This document shows, piece by piece, positions 1-12,498 of a DNA stretch of 64,000 nt. The translations under genes and the position numbers were made by a program. Each line of letters opens with the position of its first letter. Positions within the stretch are counted from its first letter, which is position 1. Under the pieces are notes generated by a model that was given only the letters and a program-made list of their open reading frames with translations, did no database searches and was not told the DNA's origin. The DNA is taken from contig CM007990.1 of the NCBI GenBank assembly GCA_002189035.1, positions 248,001-312,000 of the forward strand, written 5' to 3'. This DNA is from Utricularia gibba (taxonomy: Eukaryota > Plantae > Magnoliophyta).

Positions 1-182
1 TGGTGGAGGCGCAGGAAACCCTAGTGAATGAAAGAGGTTTATTACTGGAGGGTCATTCAGTCGTTGACAGTAGACACATCGGGTAACCATGCTCTTTGGA
101 GAAGGTGTTGGACTCTCGGTGATTAAATGGCGAAATCCTCAATGATTATTGTTGGAGAAACCTTGTGTGGTTATAAGAGAAT
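1..182. repeat. Dispersed repeat, diverged copy of 9103-9283 (possible TE remnant)
   Basis: tggtggaggcgcaggaaaccctagtgaatgaaagaggttt...ccttgtgtggttataagagaatc aligns by eye with 9103-9283 despite many substitutions; no intact ORF, TE class not determinable. Confidence 0.7.
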
Positions 183-652
183 CATGTTGAAGTTGAAAGT
201 TATTGTAGCTCCCTAACTTGAAACTAAGATTTGAGTTTGTAGTTCCTAACTAGGAACCTAAAAGTTTGGATCTTGAGCTTGAGACACAAGAGCAGTCTTT
301 GTATTCAAAAAAACTGCTTTACAAAGCTGTAACCACCAAGAATATATAGATAGATTTGAGTTGCAACTGTTGTAAAAGTTGATGTTGTATTATCAGATTT
401 GCAATGGGCATCAATTAAGGTTGGGCTTGTGCTTGGGTGGGCTTTTCAACATGGTTTTATGGGAGCCTTGTGCACCTTGTAGGTCCAGTTGGGTTCTTTC
501 CCAAGTTTCAGGGTCTTCCAAATCCACTTCAGCAAATATGCACGGTTTGGTCAAATGTTCAATGATTTTCTTATCATCTTTTAAAATAAGTATTCGATGG
601 ATCGAGCGATCATACATGAAACTCAAATATATAATAAACATGTATCATGTTA

Positions 653-1140
653 GAAAAAATTAGATTTAACCAATTAATTATAACCTACAATTTTTTATAT
701 ATTTTACATATCACTTTCAAATCCTGATGTATTATTATTTGTTCTAATAAATACTCGCCTTCAAATCGAACTTATTTGTGATCTGGTTAAGATTTATTTT
801 TTTGATGATTATAGATAATGTTTAGGTTATAAGTTGGATTTAATTGTTTGTCACCTAAACATAATGCATCTCTTTATTTTTTTTATTTTTAACCAAAGCT
901 TGGACCAATACGAAACCCGTCTTGATCACCCAAGTCATGACATAAGGCAAACGTTTTGGTATCATGTTAAAATTAAGGATCTAATGGATTGTATGAGTAT
1001 ACGTGAAGTTATTGTATACGATAAAACATGAATTATATTTGAAAAAATTAGATACAACCAATTAATTATAATTCTTAATTTTTTATATAAATGATTGTGT
1101 CACTTTCAAATTAATATGTGCTATTATTTATTCTAATCAA
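653..1140. repeat. Imperfect ~95 bp AT-rich direct repeat pair (653-750 and 1041-1140)
   Basis: gaaaaaattagat..aaccaattaattataa...tcactttcaaat...tattattt.ttctaat occurs at both positions; the second copy ends where similarity to the 9286 duplicate begins. Confidence 0.7.
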
Positions 1141-1393
1141 TTCAACCGTGGCATGCGGAGATGTATGAAGGAAATATAATTTTTCCGATCGATAGGAGTT
1201 ACAGAATGTGTGGATTATCTTCGTTGGGAGACAATTATCAGCTCAACTAACTCCTAATCCATGGCCCTACTCCTTAACTCCAATTATGCATGCAAACAAA
1301 TAGAGATCACTCACTCAATAGTTTTTTCCTTCTACAAATACCAAGCCTTAGTGGAGCTGCACTCCCACAAAATATTCTACAGAAGGAAGAAGA

Positions 1394-1751
1394 ATGGCTT
1401 CCTTCCCCAGGGTTGCTCTCCTCGCGCTCTTCGCCCTCCTCCTAGCCTCTTCCCTCGCTGCTGCCAGGGATCTCCCGGAGAATCCCAACGCCGTCGACGC
1501 ATGTAAGTCACCCTTCCGCTTTTATCGTGAAACTCTAAAAACTTTGCTCATGCCTCCTCCTTGTCTGCATGCTTTCAGCCAAACCCAGTGAAGCAGGAAA
1601 GGTTGATGACGCCAAGTGGTACGGCTACCATTGGGATATCCTCGTTACGGGTACGGCTACCATTGGATATCCCCATTACGGGTACGGCTACTATTCGGGA
1701 TATCCCCATTACGGGGGCGGCTGGTACGGCGGACACCCTGGCTGGCATTGA
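1394..1751 (+). CDS. Secreted glycine/tyrosine-rich protein GRP-1 (exons 1394-1502, 1579-1751)
   Basis: Signal peptide MASFPRVALLALFALLLASSLAAARD, phase-1 GT..AG intron, exon 2 SKPSEAGKVDDAKW then YGY/GYPHY repeats ending GGWYGGHPGWH*. Architecture matches the plant GRP family (PF07172-like). Confidence 0.88.
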
Positions 1752-2199
1752 GGACCCCCCGGACTCCGACTCCCCCGACGGAAGGATATCTCCTGTCACC
1801 GCGCATCATCCCCATGTATCCGGAGTGCAATAAAGATGCTTGCGTCAATCTGGTGTTGTGTGTGTCCCTGTGTAATCTCCCTGGTCTGCTTTCATATGAA
1901 AAAAATGGTTTGTGTCGTGTTTCAATGCTTCCTCAACCAAACACGGCATGCATAGGATTGCAACTTAGGCCCCAATAATGCAGAATCTTGACACACACGT
2001 GAAAAAGATAGTTAACCTCTCCTTGTTCAGAAAACAAGGGTTCTACCTTCTAAAATACCTCATCAAAGCAATCGCTCAGCCCACCTCAATCACATAAACC
2101 ACCCCAGATTCTTTTGATTTTAGGAAGAAGCATAGAACCCTTCTCTAACACAGAGGTTTATGTTTTGTGTGGACGATCCTATTGTCCATTTGTATTTCA

Positions 2200-2424
2200 G
2201 TTTGGACAGCTTTTGGAAAGCTGGAACCCACGATTTCTCTCGACGTTGAAAGACCTCAGGAGCTCGATGGCAAGGTGAAGGAGCTTGAAGGCATTTGCAA
2301 TCCCATCATCGCCAAGGTGTACCGCGGTGGTGGCGGTGGAGAAGTTCCCAGAATGGATGAAGACGGCCCCGCACCTCGCAGCTCCACCGGTGGTTCTGGC
2401 CCCAAGATTGAAGAAGTTGACTAA
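2200..2424 (+). pseudogene. HSP70 C-terminal gene fragment, copy A
   Basis: [21 protein letters not shown]...[10 protein letters not shown] is the cytosolic HSP70 C-terminus with the EEVD motif; no ATPase or substrate-binding exons nearby. Confidence 0.9.
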
Positions 2425-2887
2425 ACTTCGTGACACTGCTTATGTGTGTAGCAGCCTGTAAATTACGCACGGCTGTGGCTAGTCAACAAGGGCAGCCCGA
2501 CATTGATGGACGTGTAGGTAGATTTAAGTATGGTTGATAAGATGTAATGGACCTGTAGGTATAAAACCTTTATTATTACCAAGTATAATAAATCCGCTTG
2601 CGCCAATGTAAGCATCGTTTACGTACGTCTCGTCAACTTGTACTCGTCACGTGCTTGGCGCAAATAATTTAAGTTTTTATTCTAATGTTTTCGAATAAAT
2701 TTAAAGTTCGTTACATCTTCTTATGTTATTTTACCAGGAAACATCTACCGAATCCCCAATGCTCATTCCCATGCAATGTCTCAGTGATTCTCCACATACA
2801 CACAAATCACATGTAACACACGATTGATTTTCACCTTCATTAACAAACGCATTCATTCACATGGTCCCTCAAAGTATGTGTCATCCG

Positions 2888-3138
2888 TGTTGGATGATGA
2901 AAATCAAGATGGATGCTAATCATTATGGAAGAAGATTGCTGCGGTTATCAAGACAAGACGTTGTGTTTGGATAGAATTAATATCTTTAACTGCTACGGTT
3001 AAGAAACTATCTGTTTTCAATGTCTGTGTTCCTAGTACTACTATAAATATGTTGTGTAGTTTATGTAAGAAAGATGTGACCCTTTTATGAATGAAAGCAG
3101 AATAAGTTCTGTTCTTATTGTTCTCTTGATTTACAACA
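2888..3138 (+). mobile_element. Candidate copia-type solo LTR (251 bp)
   Basis: Starts TGTTG (2888), ends CAACA (3138); internal ctataaata at 3041 and aataag at 3101; flanking 5-mers atccg/ttcag match 3 of 5 (degenerate TSD); no PBS or coding region. Confidence 0.55.
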
Positions 3139-3586
3139 TTCAGGTGACTCACCCAAGCTATCTTTGGATTCAGGCAGTCAATAAAGGTACTCGAGAGGCA
3201 TCCATGATGCCCACCCAACATAACTGGGGTCTTCATATCCCAGAAGCCTGCCTCAGATCTGATAGAATTTGGAATTTTTATTGATATCCATGCGGATGCC
3301 TCAGATCTGGTGTTTGTTGTTCGCGATGTCTGAACTTGTTATGGTGTCAAAGCATGTGTTTTGTGGATGGAAGGGAGTCGTTGCAAATAGGTTTCTGGGG
3401 TGGACTTGGAGAAGAAGACTTAAGACTCGTTCCGAGGACGAGTAGACAGACATATCTTGAACAAACAACCACCCGACGGCCCTACTCTTCAGCTCCACAT
3501 TAACTCACCCGCCAGCTTCTCCTTCTATAAAATGCACCGCACTCAGCAGGCGATTCTCACACAAGACAACACACAAGAGAAGGAAG

Positions 3587-3983
3587 ATGGCTTCCAGGTC
3601 CATTCTCTTCACCACCTTGGTCTTAGCTGCTGCTGTCCTGCTCGCCTCTTCCCTCGCCGCCGCCAGGGAAACCCCGCAGTCTCTCGACACCACCGAGCAA
3701 CGTCAGTTTTCTTTTCTCCTTCTTCTTCTTATTGCACGAACTAGAAAACCCTAGATATTATGTCCATGTTTGTGTGCCTTGTTCAGCAAAGCAGTTCCAG
3801 CAAGGAACGGTCAACGATGGCAAGTGGTTCTTTCACCCGTGGTGGCATCATCCATGGAATCCTTGGTTCCACGGAGGATACGGCGGTGGGGGGTATGACG
3901 GAGGGTACGGCGGCGGTGGTTACGGCGGCGGTGGTTACGGCGGCGGCGGCGGTTACGGAGGTGGCCCCGGAGGAGGATACTGA
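3587..3983 (+). CDS. Secreted glycine-rich protein GRP-2 with Trp/His/Pro-rich segment (exons 3587-3701, 3787-3983)
   Basis: MASRSILFTTLVLAAAVLLASSLAAARE, phase-1 intron, PKQFQQGTVNDGKWFFHPWWHHPWNPWFH then (GGY)n to stop; frame intact. Confidence 0.92.
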
Positions 3984-4716
3984 AACCACCAAAAGCCATG
4001 CATCTACTTCTACACCTGGGAACTACTACAGTAATCCGCACATAAACCTGTGTTATATAATAAATGCGTTTGCGCCTGTGTAAAACTTTGTGTCCGTACC
4101 TGTCTTCTCCATGTAATATATATTACAATATGTGTTTCAGAACCCATACCACCAAATATCGGCCCGGATCCCTAACCGTTTAGATTTCAACCCGAAATTA
4201 AAACAATAAACAAGAGAATAACCTTTGTTATATATTTCGTATAAGATATTAATCTATTCCAAATATAATACCTAAATTTTTTTACCATATCTCAACACAC
4301 TCTCATGGTGTAGAGTGGTGTCATTTGACCCTATTCAAAAAAAAATCTTGTTTCATGTAACTAGTAAAACGTAATATTAACATTATAAATTTAGATTATT
4401 CTTAATTTAATATCACTAAAAAAATAAACATATTAATACAAAAATGTCAAGGACACATCACAATCTGCCTACCAATGATTTGTTCCTCAACTTTGATGCG
4501 GTTCGGGCCTCCGGGTTGATGGGTAGCATGTATTCTTTAGTTATATAATATGTGAGCCACGGTATTTAAAAAATCATGATTAAATTATGATGCGCCATGA
4601 ACTATTCATCGTAAAGCTAGGTTAAATTCGACATAATCACGATTGAATTTTTTTGGAATACAGGCTCTTTGTGTATATATATATATATTGATCATTTAAA
4701 ATAATGGGTAGTCCCA

Positions 4717-5230
4717 AGTACCAAGTCAAATTTACGTCCCCGGATAGACACATTCCAAACCCTAACAAAAAAGAAAATCAAGTTGGGTAATCCCCAGGTA
4801 CCAAGTCAAACTCAGCAGCTCTGTGATCTGTGTTTTGTTGTGAGGTTGAGCGTCGGTTTTGTGATGGGGAGGTTCATTTATCTGCTAACTGTTGAATCAT
4901 TGACACGGGAAGACTTGGAGAGGGAGGCTGGGTCAAGCCAATCGAAGCATGACAGGGACCGCCCACCATGCGATCGATCATACAGCTTCCAGTTGGCTCA
5001 GATCGCTGTAATGCAAATCTGGTGCCACGCTCCGATTCCCATCTGATCTCCCCAGTTTCTCCAAAATGCACGCACAGTATATGCTGATGATATGAGGTAG
5101 CCTCAAGGCCTCTCGAGTCAGTATCCGCAGCCTCCATGATGAGGGAATGCTCGGCATTTTGACCTCAGGGAGGAATGATCAGGAACAAGTCAAACCTTCA
5201 AAAAAGAAATGCAACTTACTTGTGTTTGTG

Positions 5231-5267
<37 letters not shown>

Positions 5268-5278
5268 CCATAAGTCAA
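4717..5278. promoter_or_regulatory. W-box (TTGACY) cluster upstream of GRP-3
   Basis: agtcaa at 4724, 4804, 5188, 5273; ggtcaa at 4931; ttgacc at 5159; several share the longer context (t)accaagtcaa or gaacaagtcaaa. Confidence 0.5.
5233..5262. repeat. (GA)n microsatellite
   Basis: Uninterrupted gagagaga run of about 14-15 units. Confidence 0.95.
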
Positions 5279-5704
5279 AATGATGTAGACTTGGAAGATA
5301 ATGAGAACCATGCGATGGAACTTAGCAATGATCTTCTTCTAAGAGTCGTTTGCTCTGATCATGATTCAGGCGTGTAGTTTAAGAACTACTCTCCGCATCA
5401 GGACTTTGTCAATACCAGCAGTAAATATCATCCCACATCGTATTCGTAAAGATAAATAGTTGGCTTGGTTCAAAGAAAACTTTTTACAGATATGAATTTA
5501 GTATGATGTAATAACAGGGTTTCCATTTCCAATGTGTTAAGCAGCTATTTGACAACTCAAAAGTTTGATAATAAATGCAATAAACAACCAGTCGGCAGTC
5601 GAGGGGGCCTACGCATCAAGTCTTAGCTGTGGAGGCGTGTCGAGCTTCATCTCCTTCTATAAATAGTGGCGCATTCTGCAAGTCATCCTCACACAGCAAG
5701 AAAA

Positions 5705-6173
5705 ATGGGTTCCATTCCAAGGCGCTTCTTGTTCACCACCTTTGCCCTGGCCGCTTTCCTCCTCGCCTTTTCGCATGCCAACGCCAGGGATCTTCCGCAG
5801 CAGACTCTCGACCCGGCAGTGGAATGTAAGTCACACCCTTTTCTCTCTCTCTCTAACCCTATAGAGTTTGCTCATACTTGCGTGTGTCTGTTGTTCAGCT
5901 AAGCATTCTAAGGAAGGAACGGTCAGTGATGCTAAGTGGTACGGCTATCCTTCGTATGGTGGAGGATACGGCGGCGGCGGAGGGTACGGCGGTGGATATG
6001 GAGGAGGGTACGGCGGCGGATATGGAGGAGGCTACGGAAGTGGAGGAGGATACGGTGGAGGAGGAGGATACGGCGGAGGAGGAGGATACGGCGGAGGAGG
6101 AGGCTACGGCGGAGGAGGAGGATATGGCGGAGGAGGAGGATACGGCGGTGGATACGGCGGTGGAGGATACTGA
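5705..6173 (+). CDS. Secreted glycine-rich protein GRP-3 (exons 5705-5825, 5899-6173)
   Basis: MGSIPRRFLFTTFALAAFLLAFSHANARD, phase-1 intron, SKHSKEGTVSDAKWYGYPSY then long (GGGGGY)/(GGGY) repeats; TATA ctataaata near 5658. Confidence 0.93.
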
Positions 6174-8210
6174 AACTAAGAGTGGCCCTCCCTCCTAACC
6201 AAAAGAGTCACCCTCGTCATGCGTGTGCTATATAATACAATAAGGATGATTCCACCAATGTATAACTCTGAGTCACTCCTCGTTTCATGCAATGCCATCC
6301 ATAATTCATTCACCTTCAACACTGAACACAGTTATCAAAGCACAACCACGAGCACAGAGGAAACCCATTTCCACTGTAAAACATGCTAATTCATTGGAAA
6401 TAAAGTAAATTACAATGATCAAATATATAAAATATTATAAATAACTAGTAACTGATTAAATAAAATATTTTCTAATTTCTAATATGATACATAAATCTTA
6501 TAGATTTGCAATTTATGCATATTCGTCAGAGATTTATCTATCGTATTCTTAATTTCAATAAAATTAACCTAATTTCATGCCTCGTCTTTGAACCGGAAAT
6601 TGATACCTAGCCACACGGTAAACTATCTGGCTCTCCATGGAGGCGATGTATATGTTATGGGAGTACTTACTCAAAGTTATGCATATTCTTCTAAAATAAA
6701 CAATTATGAATCATGAGAATCAATCAATTAAGTTTAACAGTTTATTATGTTTCTCGAAAAATACTTTTCGAAAATATTTCTCATAAAACATAAATTGGAT
6801 CTCTATAACTTCTTAAACATGACAAACACTTCTAAGTTTTTATTCTTTTTTAAATCAAAACTCACTTGATAACAAAACTACTGCATTTTTCAAAAAAAAA
6901 AAACATATAAATTTCACCAATTTTAGTGATTTCTATTAAAAAATAATAATAAAATTATGGAACCCGTTATTACAGATGAATGGTTCCGACCCACGGATTA
7001 GTGTGAACGTTTGACAACTTAACCTAAACGGCAAAGATTGGGAACAAGTCAAAGCTCTAAAATGACAATAATGATGAAGATGGGGCCAAAGTATTAATTA
7101 AAACAGATTGATCTGATTGCCTGCATAATCTAACCCATTTTTTTATATATAGTTATGTATTTAAATTATTTTTTTAAATTTTTTTTAAAATATTCTTTAA
7201 ACGAATCGAATCATTTTTTGCATTAATAATGAATTTGAATTGAAATCATTTTTCGCAGTCATCATGAATTCGAATTAAATCAGATTTAACTTCAGGTTGA
7301 ATGTCACCATCCATCATGAAGATATACATGAACATAAGTCAACATGACGTTGACCCTATTTCTACAAAATAATGTTTTTATTAAAGAAATAAAAATGAAG
7401 AGTGGGGCAGCACCTCTACTTATCCGGTGCTAAACCAAGTCAATTACGAAGAGTTCTTCATTGACACAATCATCCCTAATATTTAAATATAAAGATTTGT
7501 TTTTAAAAATATTAAGTCAGTTGTCTTTATACAGTTTACTCATTCGGAGAGGAGCTTGAGTTAAAATCGAATAATGAATTTTGAAATTTGAGGAAATCGA
7601 ATCGAATAGAATTTGGACGGGGAAATTCATCAAAGTTTGTATATGTTAAAAGGGTGATAAGCGAACCAAATCCAATAGTGATTTTTTAAAAAATATGGTA
7701 AAATCAAAACCAAAATATCGAAACCAAAAATTCGATCCGATTCCATAATCTCGCCATGTTAGGTACCAAGTCACGCTTAGCGACTAGGTCTAATTGAAAA
7801 AAAAAAACAAAGCTCCATTTTTATATGGCAAGTATTTGGACAAGGGGAAAAAAATGAATATGATGCGAAGATACGTACACATGCATCGTCCCCATGATAG
7901 AGTGATGTGGCGTGTTGGTTGAAAGAGATTTCTGATTTATATTTTTAGTTGAATAAATCAACATAAAATTTATACATAACCCTAGAAAATCCGATTTTTT
8001 AATCGAAATAAGAAAGACCTTTTCAACAAAGAAGGTGTCAAAGTGAGTGAATCATTTTGGTTGTTTATGTGATTATCACTTCTGCGAGCAACTAATCCAT
8101 GGGCTACTCTTCTTAGCGCCTGCTGAATGATGACTCTGCTAATGTTTTCTATAAATACCAACGCATTTTGGAGGGAACACTCACACAAAGCCATCATAGG
8201 ATCAAGAACA

Positions 8211-8656
8211 ATGGCTTCCTTTCCGAGGTTGGCTCTTTTCGCCGGCTTGCTCGTGTTTGCGCTCCTCCTCGTCTCTTCCCACGCTGCGGGGAGAGATCTA
8301 GCAGAGAAACCCGACTTCGTTGGCTCAAGTAAGCTCACTTGTTCTTGTTTTTGTGTGTGTGTGTAGTGGACTCACAATAAAACCCTAGATAAAGACTTCG
8401 TTCGTGCATGAATGCATCCTTGTTGTCTGGTTTCAGCCAAGCCTACTGAAGCAGGAGGGGTCGGCGAGGCTCAGTGGGAGGATATGGTGGCTGGGGAGGA
8501 GGAGGCTGGGGCGGAGGTGGCTGGGGACCCGGTGGAGGATATGGCGGCTGGGGACACCGCTGGGGACCCGGTGGAGGATATGGTGGCTGGGGACACGGCT
8601 GGGGAGGTGGCGGTTATGGTGGCTGGGGACACCGCCGATGGGGTGGTTGGAATTGA
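8211..8656 (+). CDS. Secreted Gly/Trp-rich protein GRP-4 (exons 8211-8328, 8437-8656; one missing G near 8477)
   Basis: MASFPRLALFAGLLVFALLLVSSHAAGRD, phase-1 intron, TKPTEAGGVGEAQW; restoring one G in cagtgggagga gives (GGYGGWGH/GGWGPGG)n ending WGGWN*. Confidence 0.85.
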
Positions 8657-9534
8657 GGACACCGTGCCTGGGAACTGAAGAAACTCTGCTTAAACCGCCC
8701 GTCATCTCTTAGGAATCCTAGAAAAATAATGATGATTGGCGAAAAACTTATCTGGTATGCGTGTGTGTGTGTCAATGTAAACCTTTCTAGTTCTATGTGA
8801 TACTACTCTCCGTGAGTTTGCCTTTATGTGAAAAGTGGCTTCCCAATAGACGAAAAGCTCGATGAGAATCACAATACACCTGTTGCTTACACCCATTCAC
8901 ACACAAATCGTTGAAGATAATAAAAAAGGCTGATAATCCCTGCAAGTCAAGTTGACATCGACCTTGAGAGACGAATCTGGAACATGATTACTAGCAAAAC
9001 GTTTACAGCGAAAGGCACGTATTTGCGCATATTTCACCAATTCGATCCGATCGCGATCTGATCATCATGGTTTCTTTCAAAACCCTAAAGCGAACAAGGC
9101 TTGGTGGAGGAGCAGGAAACCCTAATGACTGAAAGAGGTTTATTACTGGAGGATCATTCAGTTGATGACAGTGGACACATCGGGTGGTAAAGCTGTTTGG
9201 ACCGGGGGCTGGACTCCCGGTGACTAATGGTGGAATCCTCGATGATTATTGGTGCAGAAACCTTGTGTGGTTGTAAGAGAATCCGACCATGGCATAGGGA
9301 GATGTATGAAGGAAATATAATTTTTCCGATCGATAGGAGTTGACAGAATGAGTGGATTATCTTAATTGAGCGACAAGCATCAGCTCAACTAACACCTAAT
9401 CCATGGCCCTACTCCTTAACTCCAATTATGCATGCAAACAAATAGAGATCACTCACTCAATAGTTTTTTCCTTCTATAAATACCACCCTTTGTGGAGCGG
9501 CACTCGCACAGAATCTTCTACACAAGCAAGAAGA

Positions 9535-9878
9535 ATGGCTTCCTTCCCCAGGGTTGCTCTCCTCGCCCTCTTCGCTCTCCTCCTGGTCTCTTCCCTCGCT
9601 GCTGCCAGGGATCTCCCGGAGAATCCCAACGCCGTCGACGCATGTAAGTCACCCTTCCGCTTTTATCGTGACACACTAAAGCCCTAAAAACTTTGCTCAT
9701 GCCTCCTCCTTATCTGCATACTTTCAGCCAAACCCAGCGAAGCAGGAGAGGTTGATGACGCCAAGTGGTTCGGCTTTCCCGGTTACGGGTACGGCTACGG
9801 TTGGGGATATCCCCGCTGGGGCGGCTGGTACGGCGGATACCCACGTTGGGTGGATACAGATGGGGTGGCTGGCATTGA
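9535..9878 (+). CDS. Secreted Gly/Tyr/Trp-rich protein GRP-5 (exons 9535-9643, 9728-9878; one missing G near 9849)
   Basis: Paralog of GRP-1: same signal peptide and intron, KPSEAGEVDDAKWFGFPGYGYGYGWGYPRWGGWYGGYPRW(G)GYRWGGWH* after restoring one G. Confidence 0.87.
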
Positions 9879-10327
9879 GGACCCCCCGGACTCCGACTCC
9901 CCCGACGGAAGGATATCTCCTGTCACCGCGCATCATCCCCATGTATCCGGAGTGCAATAAAGATGCTTGCGTCAATCTGGTGTTGTGTGTGTCCCTGTGT
10001 AATCTCCCTGGTCTGCTTTCATATGAAAAAAATGGTTTGTGTCGTGTTTCAATGCTTCCTCAACCAAACACGGCATGCATAGGATTGCAACTTAGGCCCC
10101 AATAATGCAGAATCTTGACACACACGTGAAAAAGATAGTTAACCTCTCCTTGTTCAGAAAACAAGGGTTCTACCTTCTAAAATACCTCATCAAAGCAATC
10201 GCTCAGCCCACCTCAATCACATAAACCACCCCAGATTCTTTTGATTTTAGGAAGAAGCATAGAACCCTTCTCTAACACAGAGGTTTATGTTTTGTGTGGA
10301 CGATCCTATTGTCCATTTGTATTTCAG

Positions 10328-10540
10328 TTTGGACAGCTTTTGAAAAGCTGGAACCCACGATCCTCTCGACGTTGAAAGAGCTCAGGAGTTCGATGACAAG
10401 GTGAAGGAGCTTGAAAGCATTTGCAATCCCATCATCGCCAAGGTGTACCGCGGTGGAGAAGTTCCCAGAATGGATGAACACGGCCCCGCACCTCGCAGCT
10501 CCACCCGTGGTTCTGGCCCCAAGATTGAAGAAGTTGACTA
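10328..10540 (+). pseudogene. HSP70 C-terminal gene fragment, copy B
   Basis: [24 protein letters not shown]...[10 protein letters not shown]; a 1-nt difference upstream and a 9-nt deletion relative to copy A. Confidence 0.9.
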
Positions 10541-11820
10541 AACTTCGTGACACTGCTTATGTGTGTAGCAGCCTGTAAATTACGCACGTGAACCGCTGTT
10601 GGTAGCAGCCTGTAAATTACGCACGGCTGTGGCTAGTCAACAGGGCAGCCCGACATTGATGGACGTGTAGGTAGATTTAAGTATGGTTGATAAGATGTAA
10701 TGGACCAATCCTGTCAACCCTAATTAAAATACAAAAAGATTTGGGGTTGCAGCCAAATTTGTCAAACCTAATGTATGTGTTTTATAAAAGATAATGGTTG
10801 ATAATTACAAATAAAATATTTTATTTAGAAGGTACTATAAATTGGAATTTTAATTATCATAAAAATTAGATTTAGTAATTTCATATCTCATCTTTTTAAT
10901 GAAATCATGAAATTCTTTCCTATTTAAATAATTTATATTCAAATATACATTATATTTTTCATTCGAAATAAAAAGACACCACATGTTATTTATTTAAATA
11001 TATATTTTGTATTTTCTCTAGAATACCCGTATCCATGACCCTACTTCTTGAACTTCAATTACGTACACAAATGCACCAGAGCCGTGTTTGATTTTGGTTC
11101 TTATTTATTATTTGCGATTGATTTTTATCGAAATTCCTTATATTTTGAAATTCGTTAATTTATATCATTTATAATTGTGTAATACAAATTGATAATTTTC
11201 GTCCGTTCTCATAAGAATTATCGCGGCGGCGCCCGTTGAAGCTGCCTCAGAATTGCTTTCTCCCGCCGGTGCCAAATGGCGCTTCAGGTTAATCCTTACA
11301 CGCTCCATTCTCTCGAGGCCATGCTTCGGCCTTGTCTTGTGTTGGGAATCCGATAGCCCTTCGATTCGCAACCAGATAAACCATGAGACGACGCACAGCA
11401 AGAAACAACCAGACACAGTAACGATCAGCATGTGAACAATTCGAAGCCGTTCTCCGGAAATACTCACGATTCTCACAGACTGATCGTTACTCGGCAGTTC
11501 GAAACCGAATCGGCGATCGAGAGAGAGGAGCGAACGAAATGCCCATCGCAATTTTCACGATCTCAAGAAACCCAGCGGCCAGTTCGTGCATTCCACTGTA
11601 AAGTGTCCGTTATTTTATTTTCAAAAATCAGTTTGGGCCATAAACAGCTTGTATCCGGGCCTATTAGTCTCCCGTAGCTCAATGTTCAGGGATCCGTTTT
11701 AATATGGCCCAGGCCCAACGCCTTCTTGTGCACATTCAATTGCTTTTTCAGGATTTGAATTCTTTAGAATCCCAGAATACATTTTCTGGGTATCAGGATT
11801 TTGTTCCTGTGGGTATCGCA

Positions 11821-12498
11821 ATGGAAATTGGGTTGGCTGGCCTCCAAGAAATATGCTTCATTTTGGTTCGTTGGGTTATCGCCATCAGGGAATCAGGAGG
11901 AGCCACTTTCCTGGATAGGTTTGAAAAGGAAAGTTGTTGGATTGAATGAAGAAGCATTTGGATATTGTCGTAGAACTCTGTTTAGACTTTCTCTTGCTTT
12001 ATTTTTTGTGGAATTGCGTCCCGTTAACGGAGTATCGGATTCGATGCATAAAGCAAGAGGTGTATGGGAGAGTTCCCCAGATGTAGTCAAGAGCTTCCCT
12101 TGGAACAATGCCTTGGACAAGCTCATCCATGGATCATTGACCTTGGTTTAACAGTGTTCTTATACTTTACCTAGTCCTGTTTTCGCTGTCTCCTCAGTGG
12201 AATGTCTTATTGTGCTCAGGGGGGAAAGGTGTTTCTCGTCCCATTTCTGTTCTTGCTTGGCCTTGCTGCTGCTGATATTCTTCAAGAGATGCTTATTTGG
12301 GATCCAACTTCATATCTCGAGGTGCATTCAGCTTCCCCATTTATCATCAACAACACATTTAGCAGCCTGTTGGTCGTAGTGAAGAATGAACAAGCATCAC
12401 ATGGTCAAGGGAGCGCTCTGCAGAATCATGTTCTCTATGTTTTTGTGGCTCAAAGTACCTCGGCATCATCCAGCACAAGCTGTGATCAAGAATTCTAA
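11821..12498 (+). pseudogene. Degraded homolog of a conserved plastid membrane protein (EMB1273-like)
   Basis: Fragments VWESSPDVVKSFPWNNALDKLI, MSYCAQGGKVFLVPFLFLLGLAAADILQE and HMVKGALCRIMFSMFLW lie in different frames with several indels; the intervening VPWHL..PGPYYPYWGR segment recalled for this family is not visible. Family name is from memory. Confidence 0.55.

Follow-up and report, generated by a model that had tools for sequence, protein, structure and literature searches.

A tandem array of transcribed genes for putative secreted glycine/aromatic-rich proteins in Utricularia gibba

We analysed a 64 kb stretch of the Utricularia gibba genome (contig CM007990.1 of assembly GCA_002189035.1, positions 248,001 to 312,000; hereafter the window, with positions counted in nucleotides (nt) from its first letter), in which an earlier sequence-only reading had recognised five neighbouring genes with a common leader and junction motif and dissimilar tails. 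These genes, modelled here from region 1–11000 and correctly delimited by that reading, form a real, expressed gene cluster of a known plant kind, whose one unusual trait is its Trp-rich tails. The interpretation that we favour, with moderate confidence, is that the cluster encodes secreted glycine-rich proteins (GRPs) of the wall or apoplast, belonging to the signal-peptide classes I and V, with a leader kept for entry into the endoplasmic reticulum (ER) and with tails that turn over by repeat instability. We further propose that the region belongs to a larger cluster of tandem genes for small secreted glycine/aromatic-rich proteins.

The five genes, g1 to g5, all lie on the + strand, and each was modelled with two exons (Table 1). 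The coding part of exon 1 measures 109, 115, 121, 118 and 109 nt in g1 to g5, respectively, and every intron is in phase 1 because these lengths are always 3n+1. The introns have GT..AG borders, are 73–108 nt long and sit exactly 41 nt ahead of the end of a conserved Trp codon. Accordingly, exon 2 opens in all five genes with two codon-completing bases followed by 13 codons, the last of which encodes this Trp. Each protein starts with M-A/G-S and a hydrophobic leader, and a TATA-type box is found 47–61 nt ahead of each ATG. The gene models thus bear out the earlier description of five co-oriented two-exon genes with a phase-1 intron at the same place, and for three of the introns RNA joints do so as well (see below).

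The conserved Trp closes a short junction motif, which reads GKVDDAKW in g1, GTVNDGKW in g2, GTVSDAKW in g3, GGVGEAQW in g4 and GEVDDAKW in g5. When the whole window was searched in six frames with the pattern G-x-V-x-x-[AG]-[KQ]-W, exactly five matches were obtained, each of them downstream of a signal-peptide exon. The shared junction G-x-V-x-[DE]-[AG]-[KQ]-W, as originally proposed, is thereby confirmed, with no copies elsewhere in the window. Chance recurrence of the motif was considered and ruled out: all five matches stand in homologous gene contexts, and the rough chance expectation is about 0.1 per window. Legume GRPs carry the string V-N-D-A-K-Y ahead of their Gly repeats.

Read contigs from two DNA runs (X1 and X3) and two RNA runs (X6 and X10) were aligned to positions 3900–9899, a range that leaves the g1 and g2 introns outside. 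The RNA contigs contain the joints 5825>5899, 8328>8437 and 9643>9728, all with GT..AG borders. RNA depth reached 1660/3227 over the 3' end of g2, 2867 over g4 and 2039 over g5, and was zero between the genes. Poly(A) loose ends are present behind about 4156 (g2) and 6312 (g3), and the adapter-like 5' loose ends of the RNA contigs place the transcript start of g5 near 9507, about 25–30 nt past its TATA box. g2 to g5 are strongly transcribed, and their transcription is confined to the genes. The sequence-only reading had named a lack of transcripts from the array as an outcome that would speak against it; four of the five genes are transcribed at high depth.

Signal peptides were assessed by a heuristic that considers n-region charge, core hydropathy and the -3/-1 rule. 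In all five leaders Arg is present in the n-region and a core of 10 residues has a mean hydropathy of 2.7–3.3; the leaders end in AAARD, AAARE, ANARD, AAGRD and AAARD in g1 to g5, respectively. The small residues at -3/-1 indicate that cleavage is likely to occur just ahead of R-D/E, in agreement with the earlier description of a signal peptide ending in A-R/G-R-D/E. By this heuristic the products carry the N-terminal signal peptide of class I GRPs, and exon 1 of g2, g4 and g5 shows sub-threshold similarity to the leader portion of the Pfam GRP family PF07172. Exon 1 pieces also match the leaders of Sar8.2 and of another secreted peptide family in Pfam. The 25–26 residues after the leader have a net charge of -1 to -4, and g4 has Gln at the position ahead of the junction Trp (P1), where the other four genes have Lys. 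No Cys occurs in the spliced products of g1 to g5, which consequently lack the Cys-rich C-terminal domain of class II GRPs.

Behind the Trp each gene has, as had been stated, a low-complexity aromatic/Gly tail of its own. The g3 tail is 73% Gly and 22% Tyr (net charge 0), that of g2 is 52% Gly with an N-terminal Trp/His/Pro/Phe block (net charge -1), and the read-supported g4 tail (see below) is 60% Gly and 18% Trp (net charge +3) and contains YGGWG four times. These three tails have a high-Gly (GGX)n region. The g1 tail as assembled is 27% Gly and 23% Tyr with five His (net charge -1), and the read-supported g5 tail is 38% Gly, 19% Tyr and 19% Trp (net charge +3). The aromatic share of the tails ranges from 23 to 46%.

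The frame of the assembled sequence is disturbed in three of the genes, g5, g4 and g1. As assembled, g5 departs from the aromatic reading after ...YPRW and continues to 9960, and the stop at 9878 lies in another frame. X3, X6 and X10 all have, at full depth, one more G behind 9847, which restores the stop at 9878, and the X6 run has no other differences from the examined stretch. Since three runs agree on this G and X6 otherwise matches that stretch, the g5 break is most plausibly a G-run that was called too short, and the product a protein of 86 residues. In at least one G-run at a Trp-Gly junction (9848–9850), where three runs contradict it, the assembly is thus short of a G. The g5 end at 9878, as first described, is out of frame in the raw assembly and is recovered with the extra G.

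The situation in g4 is different. As assembled, the leader frame of g4 leads into an acidic EDMVAGEEE... tract with a net charge of -19, and the (GGYGGWGH)n tail lies in the +1 frame; one more G in the run 8476–8478 opens the (GGYGGWGH)n frame, with a stop at 8656. One X1 DNA contig of 424 nt, otherwise identical to the window, has this additional G behind 8475; the X10 RNA contigs (depth 80.7) lack it, and X6 has no coverage of the site. The discrepancy could be due to a mistake in the assembly, to polymorphism at the site or to reads that derive from a paralogue farther upstream in the array. The (GGYGGWGH)n tail claimed for g4 therefore holds for that DNA contig, but neither for the assembled frame nor for the X10 RNA. 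If the three-G state at 8476–8478 is real in some plants, as the X10 RNA suggests, the abundant g4 mRNA would specify a secreted acidic tail of 67 residues in place of the Trp/Gly tail.

In g1, the tail of GYPHY/YGY type that had been reported is present as a tail of about 32-nt repeats, but is interrupted by an out-of-register patch, which originates from shortfalls of 1 nt and 2 nt in two G-runs of the repeat. Three of five 31-mers sampled from the patch were found in four DNA runs from 2013, and at least one of the two g1 indels is therefore probably real. None of the five 31-mers was found in the RNA runs listed, which thus gave no sign of expression of g1 as assembled. All four shortfall sites (1633–1635, 1665–1666, 8476–8478 and 9848–9850) fall in runs of G where a Trp codon meets a Gly codon (TGG-GGN). 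As a result, gene-finding in this assembly would mis-frame Trp-Gly-rich genes in a systematic manner, and this may explain why databases yielded no predicted protein for the array genes.

The tails are tandem repeats with periods of about 31–32 nt in g1, 15/18 nt in g2, 18/24/12 nt in g3 and 39/15 nt in g4, that is multiples of three with the exception of g1. Conserved sequence gives way to variable sequence within exon 2, 41 nt past the intron. Among the older paralogues, identity was 64–71% for exon 1 and 63–80% for the first 41 nt of exon 2, compared to a shuffle baseline of about 58%; the upstream 200 nt, the intron and the downstream 200 nt were close to the baseline, and the tails were not alignable. 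The synonymous divergence (dS) of the leader and junction module is 0.5–1.45 and its ratio of nonsynonymous to synonymous divergence (dN/dS) is 0.22–0.88 among these paralogues, which points to old duplications and to purifying selection of a moderate, not a strict, kind. Invariant columns number about 15 of 55 and include G, V and W of the junction. What had been called a 'fixed' cassette is thus real as a shared leader plus short N-terminal region, but is only moderately conserved. The tails, on the other hand, had been called 'swappable', which was not borne out. Exon shuffling as their source was ruled out because the variable part begins inside exon 2. Since, moreover, each tail is a tandem repeat of its own, the tails diverged in place, through expansion and contraction of repeats and not by module swap, and their repeat structure points to slippage or unequal exchange in place as the origin of the diversity.

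The composition of the products can be compared with established GRP classes, of which class I combines a signal peptide with subsequent (GGX)n repeats and class V is marked by mixed GGX/GXGX repeats (PMC5852109, Table 1 therein). By this standard g2 to g4 agree with class I, and g1 and g5 come nearer to class V. The soybean PF07172 family offers a parallel at the gene level: 10 of its 11 genes have two exons and one intron, and five tandem duplicates (GmGRP1-5) lie on one strand within 53 kb of Gm02 (PMC13685382). Like GmGRP1-5, the array consists of small signal-peptide plus Gly-rich repeat proteins, mostly from two exons, in tandem same-strand copies with paralogue-specific tails. Unlike PF07172 GRPs, its pieces score below the family threshold, g1 and g5 have Gly-aromatic-Pro repeats with the low Gly contents given above, g2 has its Trp/His/Pro/Phe block, and g4 is rich in Trp.

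According to the interpretation as wall or apoplast GRPs, the signal peptide would be removed after the small-residue triplet (AAA, ANA or AAG) ahead of R-D/E, and the secreted product would retain a mildly acidic N-terminal segment of about 25 residues and a disordered Gly/Tyr/Trp/His tail. The tail would self-associate through its aromatic residues. For classical Tyr-rich wall GRPs, oxidative cross-linking of Tyr has been proposed, and the tail Tyr residues may be cross-linked in the wall or apoplast in the same manner. The leader and junction would be under moderate purifying selection because of their role in ER entry and sorting, and the tails would drift fast through slippage and unequal exchange of 12–39-nt units; specific cleavage ahead of the Trp is probably not needed for function. 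If the tails are only matrix proteins of the wall or apoplast, the array would represent another lineage-specific GRP cluster, and a clean case of leader conservation combined with repeat-driven tail turnover.

Several observations weigh against this interpretation. Word-indexed protein searches with exon 2 of g2, exon 2 of g3 and the g1 leader (exon 1 plus intron read-through) revealed no homologues, and an exhaustive HMMER profile search with four exon 2 translations against 1.84 billion representatives gave 0 matches. However, it should be underlined that the HMMER search missed even ordinary GGY-type GRPs; short queries of low complexity are therefore probably invisible to it, and the lack of matches is no evidence of novelty. 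PF07172 has a gathering cut-off of 30 bits for the whole protein and was scored here on single exon pieces, none of which reached it: the best scores were 17.0 bits for g2 exon 1 (profile positions 1–29) and 12.8 bits for g2 exon 2 (48–86), followed by 12.2 and 12.0 bits for exon 1 of g4 and g5, respectively, and the g1 and g3 pieces gave no match to this family. The model itself consists largely of signal peptide plus Gly-rich composition and is known to give compositional matches (PMC2912341). Moreover, the Gly-aromatic dipeptide repeats with Pro in g1 and g5 are not of GGX type, no wall-GRP counterpart of the g2 Trp/His/Pro/Phe block was found described, and a purely structural role leaves the invariant Trp after a conserved spacer unexplained. 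In favour of the GRP interpretation, the nearest named cluster of the g3 tail in the ESM Atlas was plant PF07172 at 0.68, which is a lead only; the other tails came closest to keratin-associated Gly/Tyr proteins and bacteriocins (both at about 0.66–0.75), and cuticle proteins were also among the neighbours, all below 0.8 and to be taken as compositional leads only. A literature search for the junction motif strings returned surnames only, and one for Trp-rich plant GRPs nothing relevant.

As an alternative, the genes might encode defence-peptide precursors of the shepherin or nematode NLP/caenacin type. The mildly acidic 25-residue spacer would then, after removal of the signal peptide, be clipped at K/Q-W to release neutral-to-cationic antimicrobial peptides rich in Gly, Tyr, Trp and His, and the array would be a diversifying library. 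We regard this as possible, yet clearly the less probable explanation. The charges of the spacer and of the read-supported, His-containing g4 and g5 tails agree with it, as does the preservation of G, V and W of the junction among paralogues with dS values up to 1.45. The shep-GRP of Capsella bursa-pastoris is a 120-residue precursor with a signal peptide, shepherins I and II, a linker dipeptide and a C-terminal propeptide, from which the shepherins are cut (PMC4695807). The array products resemble it as putative secreted precursors of GRP type, in which the signal peptide and an N-terminal part are followed by sequence rich in Gly and in His/Tyr; the shepherins are proven antimicrobial peptides. 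Unlike shep-GRP, however, the array products have a single unbroken tail up to the stop, with neither an internal linker nor a C-terminal propeptide, and the tail is dominated by Tyr/Trp and not by His. The shepherin analogy of the sequence-only reading is accordingly kept for the general architecture and given up for linker dipeptide and propeptide. In legume NCR/defensin-like genes, a signal-peptide exon is followed by a phase-1 intron a few codons ahead of the mature part, and the leader is more constrained than the mature part (PMC12461094). The array shares with them the two exons, the phase-1 intron after the signal-peptide exon, the more conserved leader and the tandem expansion; a conserved leader, a fast-evolving mature part and a phase-1 intron are typical of plant genes for antimicrobial-type peptides (PMC12461094). 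In contrast, the mature NCR/defensin-like peptides are Cys-rich and folded, whereas the array tails are Cys-free and of low complexity. A release of peptides is also disfavoured by the P1 residue (no conserved basic or dibasic site, with Gln in g4) and by the uncharged (GGGY)n tail of g3, which is like that of ordinary wall GRPs, and repeat slippage accounts for the tail differences with no need of diversifying selection. Nematode NLP/caenacin peptides are secreted, Gly/aromatic-rich products of large gene families typified by YGGWG/YGGYG (PMC6780910), and the repeated YGGWG of g4 is of this type. These are animal genes, though, and the array is in a plant; no sequence homology was found between them, and the resemblance is best taken as compositional convergence, common ancestry not being expected. 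That the array is a plant counterpart of NLP/caenacin, with fast-diversifying Cys-free Trp/Tyr/His-rich peptides cut from a conserved acidic propiece at the invariant Trp for defence or for conditioning of external surfaces, is a speculative idea to which we give little credence. If the tails were released as peptides, such Trp-rich, Cys-free plant defence peptides would constitute a new chemical class.

As a specialised variant of the structural interpretation, the products could be adhesive or coacervate-forming matrix proteins, whose aromatic-rich Gly tails would phase-separate or glue surfaces in the manner of mussel byssal or keratin-associated Gly/Tyr proteins. The aromatic content of the tails is in line with this, and so are the keratin-associated and cuticle proteins among their compositional neighbours (all scoring below 0.7, leads only); YGGWG/YGGYG strings are reportedly found also in work on mussel adhesion proteins. 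The basis of the comparison is purely compositional, and we find it improbable. Even harder to uphold is the notion that the frame breaks in g1, g4 and g5 are real and that several copies are pseudogenes transcribed by inertia. Frame-breaking G-run shortfalls do occur in three of the five assembled genes, the X10 RNA contigs match the assembly at 8475, and three of the five sampled words of the g1 patch were found in DNA runs, with none of the five in the listed RNA runs. On the other hand, the g5 break is contradicted by all three covering runs, including an RNA run otherwise without differences, and the g4 break by one DNA contig; g2 and g3 are intact, and the repeat periods of g2 to g4 have remained multiples of three. 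We thus consider a decaying array very unlikely, and retain wall or apoplast GRPs as the preferred interpretation.

Table 1. Positions of gene parts and related features of the array in the window
Feature	Position	Strand	Remarks
g1 TATA-like box TACAAATA	1333..1340	+	61 nt ahead of ATG; aligns with the boxes of g2 to g5
g1 exon 1, coding part	1394..1502	+	109 nt; signal peptide and start of N-terminal region; ends in phase 1
g1 intron	1503..1578	+	76 nt, GT..AG; prediction based on homology to g5
g1 exon 2, coding part	1579..1751	+	GKVDDAKW, then Tyr/His/Pro/Gly tail of about 32-nt repeats
g1 out-of-register patch	1633..1666	+	11 residues, WDILVTGTATI; between shortened G-runs GGG 1633-1635 and GG 1665-1666; frame restored after
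g2 TATA box	3526..3533	+	
g2 exon 1, coding part	3587..3701	+	115 nt
g2 intron	3702..3786	+	85 nt, GT..AG; rests on homology
g2 exon 2, coding part	3787..3983	+	GTVNDGKW, Trp/His/Pro/Phe-rich 16-mer, then (GGY)-type repeats
g2 3' untranslated region	3984..4156	+	AATAAA at 4059; poly(A) loose ends at about 4156
g3 TATA box	5658..5665	+	
g3 exon 1, coding part	5705..5825	+	121 nt
g3 intron	5826..5898	+	73 nt; joint in X6 RNA contig
g3 exon 2, coding part	5899..6173	+	GTVSDAKW, then 73% Gly (GGGY/GGGGGY)n tail
g3 3' untranslated region	6174..6312	+	Poly(A) loose end at 6312
g4 TATA box	8150..8157	+	
g4 exon 1, coding part	8211..8328	+	118 nt
g4 intron	8329..8436	+	108 nt; joint in X6 and X10 RNA contigs
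g4 exon 2, coding part, as assembled	8437..8678	+	Acidic tail; stop at 8678
g5 TATA box	9475..9482	+	
g5 exon 1, coding part	9535..9643	+	109 nt
g5 intron	9644..9727	+	84 nt; joint in X6 and X10 RNA contigs
g5 exon 2, coding part, read-supported	9728..9878	+	Extra G in run 9848-9850; stop at 9878
Duplicated block with g1 and HSP70 C-terminal fragment	1139..2553	+	Partner 9280-10706, 92-99% identity
Duplicated block with g5 and HSP70 C-terminal fragment	9280..10706	+	

Apart from the TATA boxes, the promoters share an element (GGCCCTACTC or GGGCTACTC) about 40–60 nt upstream of them, at 1270–1300 (g1), 3470–3500 (g2), 8095–8125 (g4) and 9405–9435 (g5), and the g3 promoter has a weaker version of it. 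The telo-box-like octamer AAACCCTA occurs eight times in the window (at 16, 3746, 4757, 8380, 9080, 9117, 27618 and 41094) compared to 1.85 copies expected. Six copies are in the first 9.2 kb, two of them inside the g2 and g4 introns, and the introns of g3 and g5 have one-off variants of the octamer at the aligned place. The octamer may be a shared cis-element. An Rfam search of 1–12000 gave no match, and a (GA)17 microsatellite, at which reads are cut, lies between g2 and g3 (5230–5264).

g1 and g5 form a recent pair with a dS of 0.11. Their junction regions and 3' untranslated regions are practically identical, and the tail of about 120 nt is rearranged by gain and loss of units. Positions 1–183 of the window match 9102–9283, which would agree with a continuation of the array upstream of the window, as would the DNA contig with a g2-like variant described below. 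Compared with the copy of the duplicated block that holds g5, the copy that holds g1 is broken by an AT-rich stretch of about 955 nt (184–1138). This stretch contains two similar sub-segments (aaaaaattagat.caaccaattaattataa) and could be a small element that was inserted here. Both g1 and g5 are followed, at a distance of about 400 nt, by a C-terminal fragment of a cytosolic HSP70 with the ending ...PKIEEVD (2167–2424 and 10294–10541), the first of which matches HSP70 chains at residues 595–651 with an E value of 6.8e-10. The fragments look like gene relics that were copied together with the GRP gene. Finally, X1 and X3 DNA contigs (6146–6166, 3900–3941) join GGY repeats of g3 to g2-type sequence, and one DNA contig has a Trp/His block of g2-like type that is not identical with the one in the window; these contigs point to further paralogues, probably upstream in the array.

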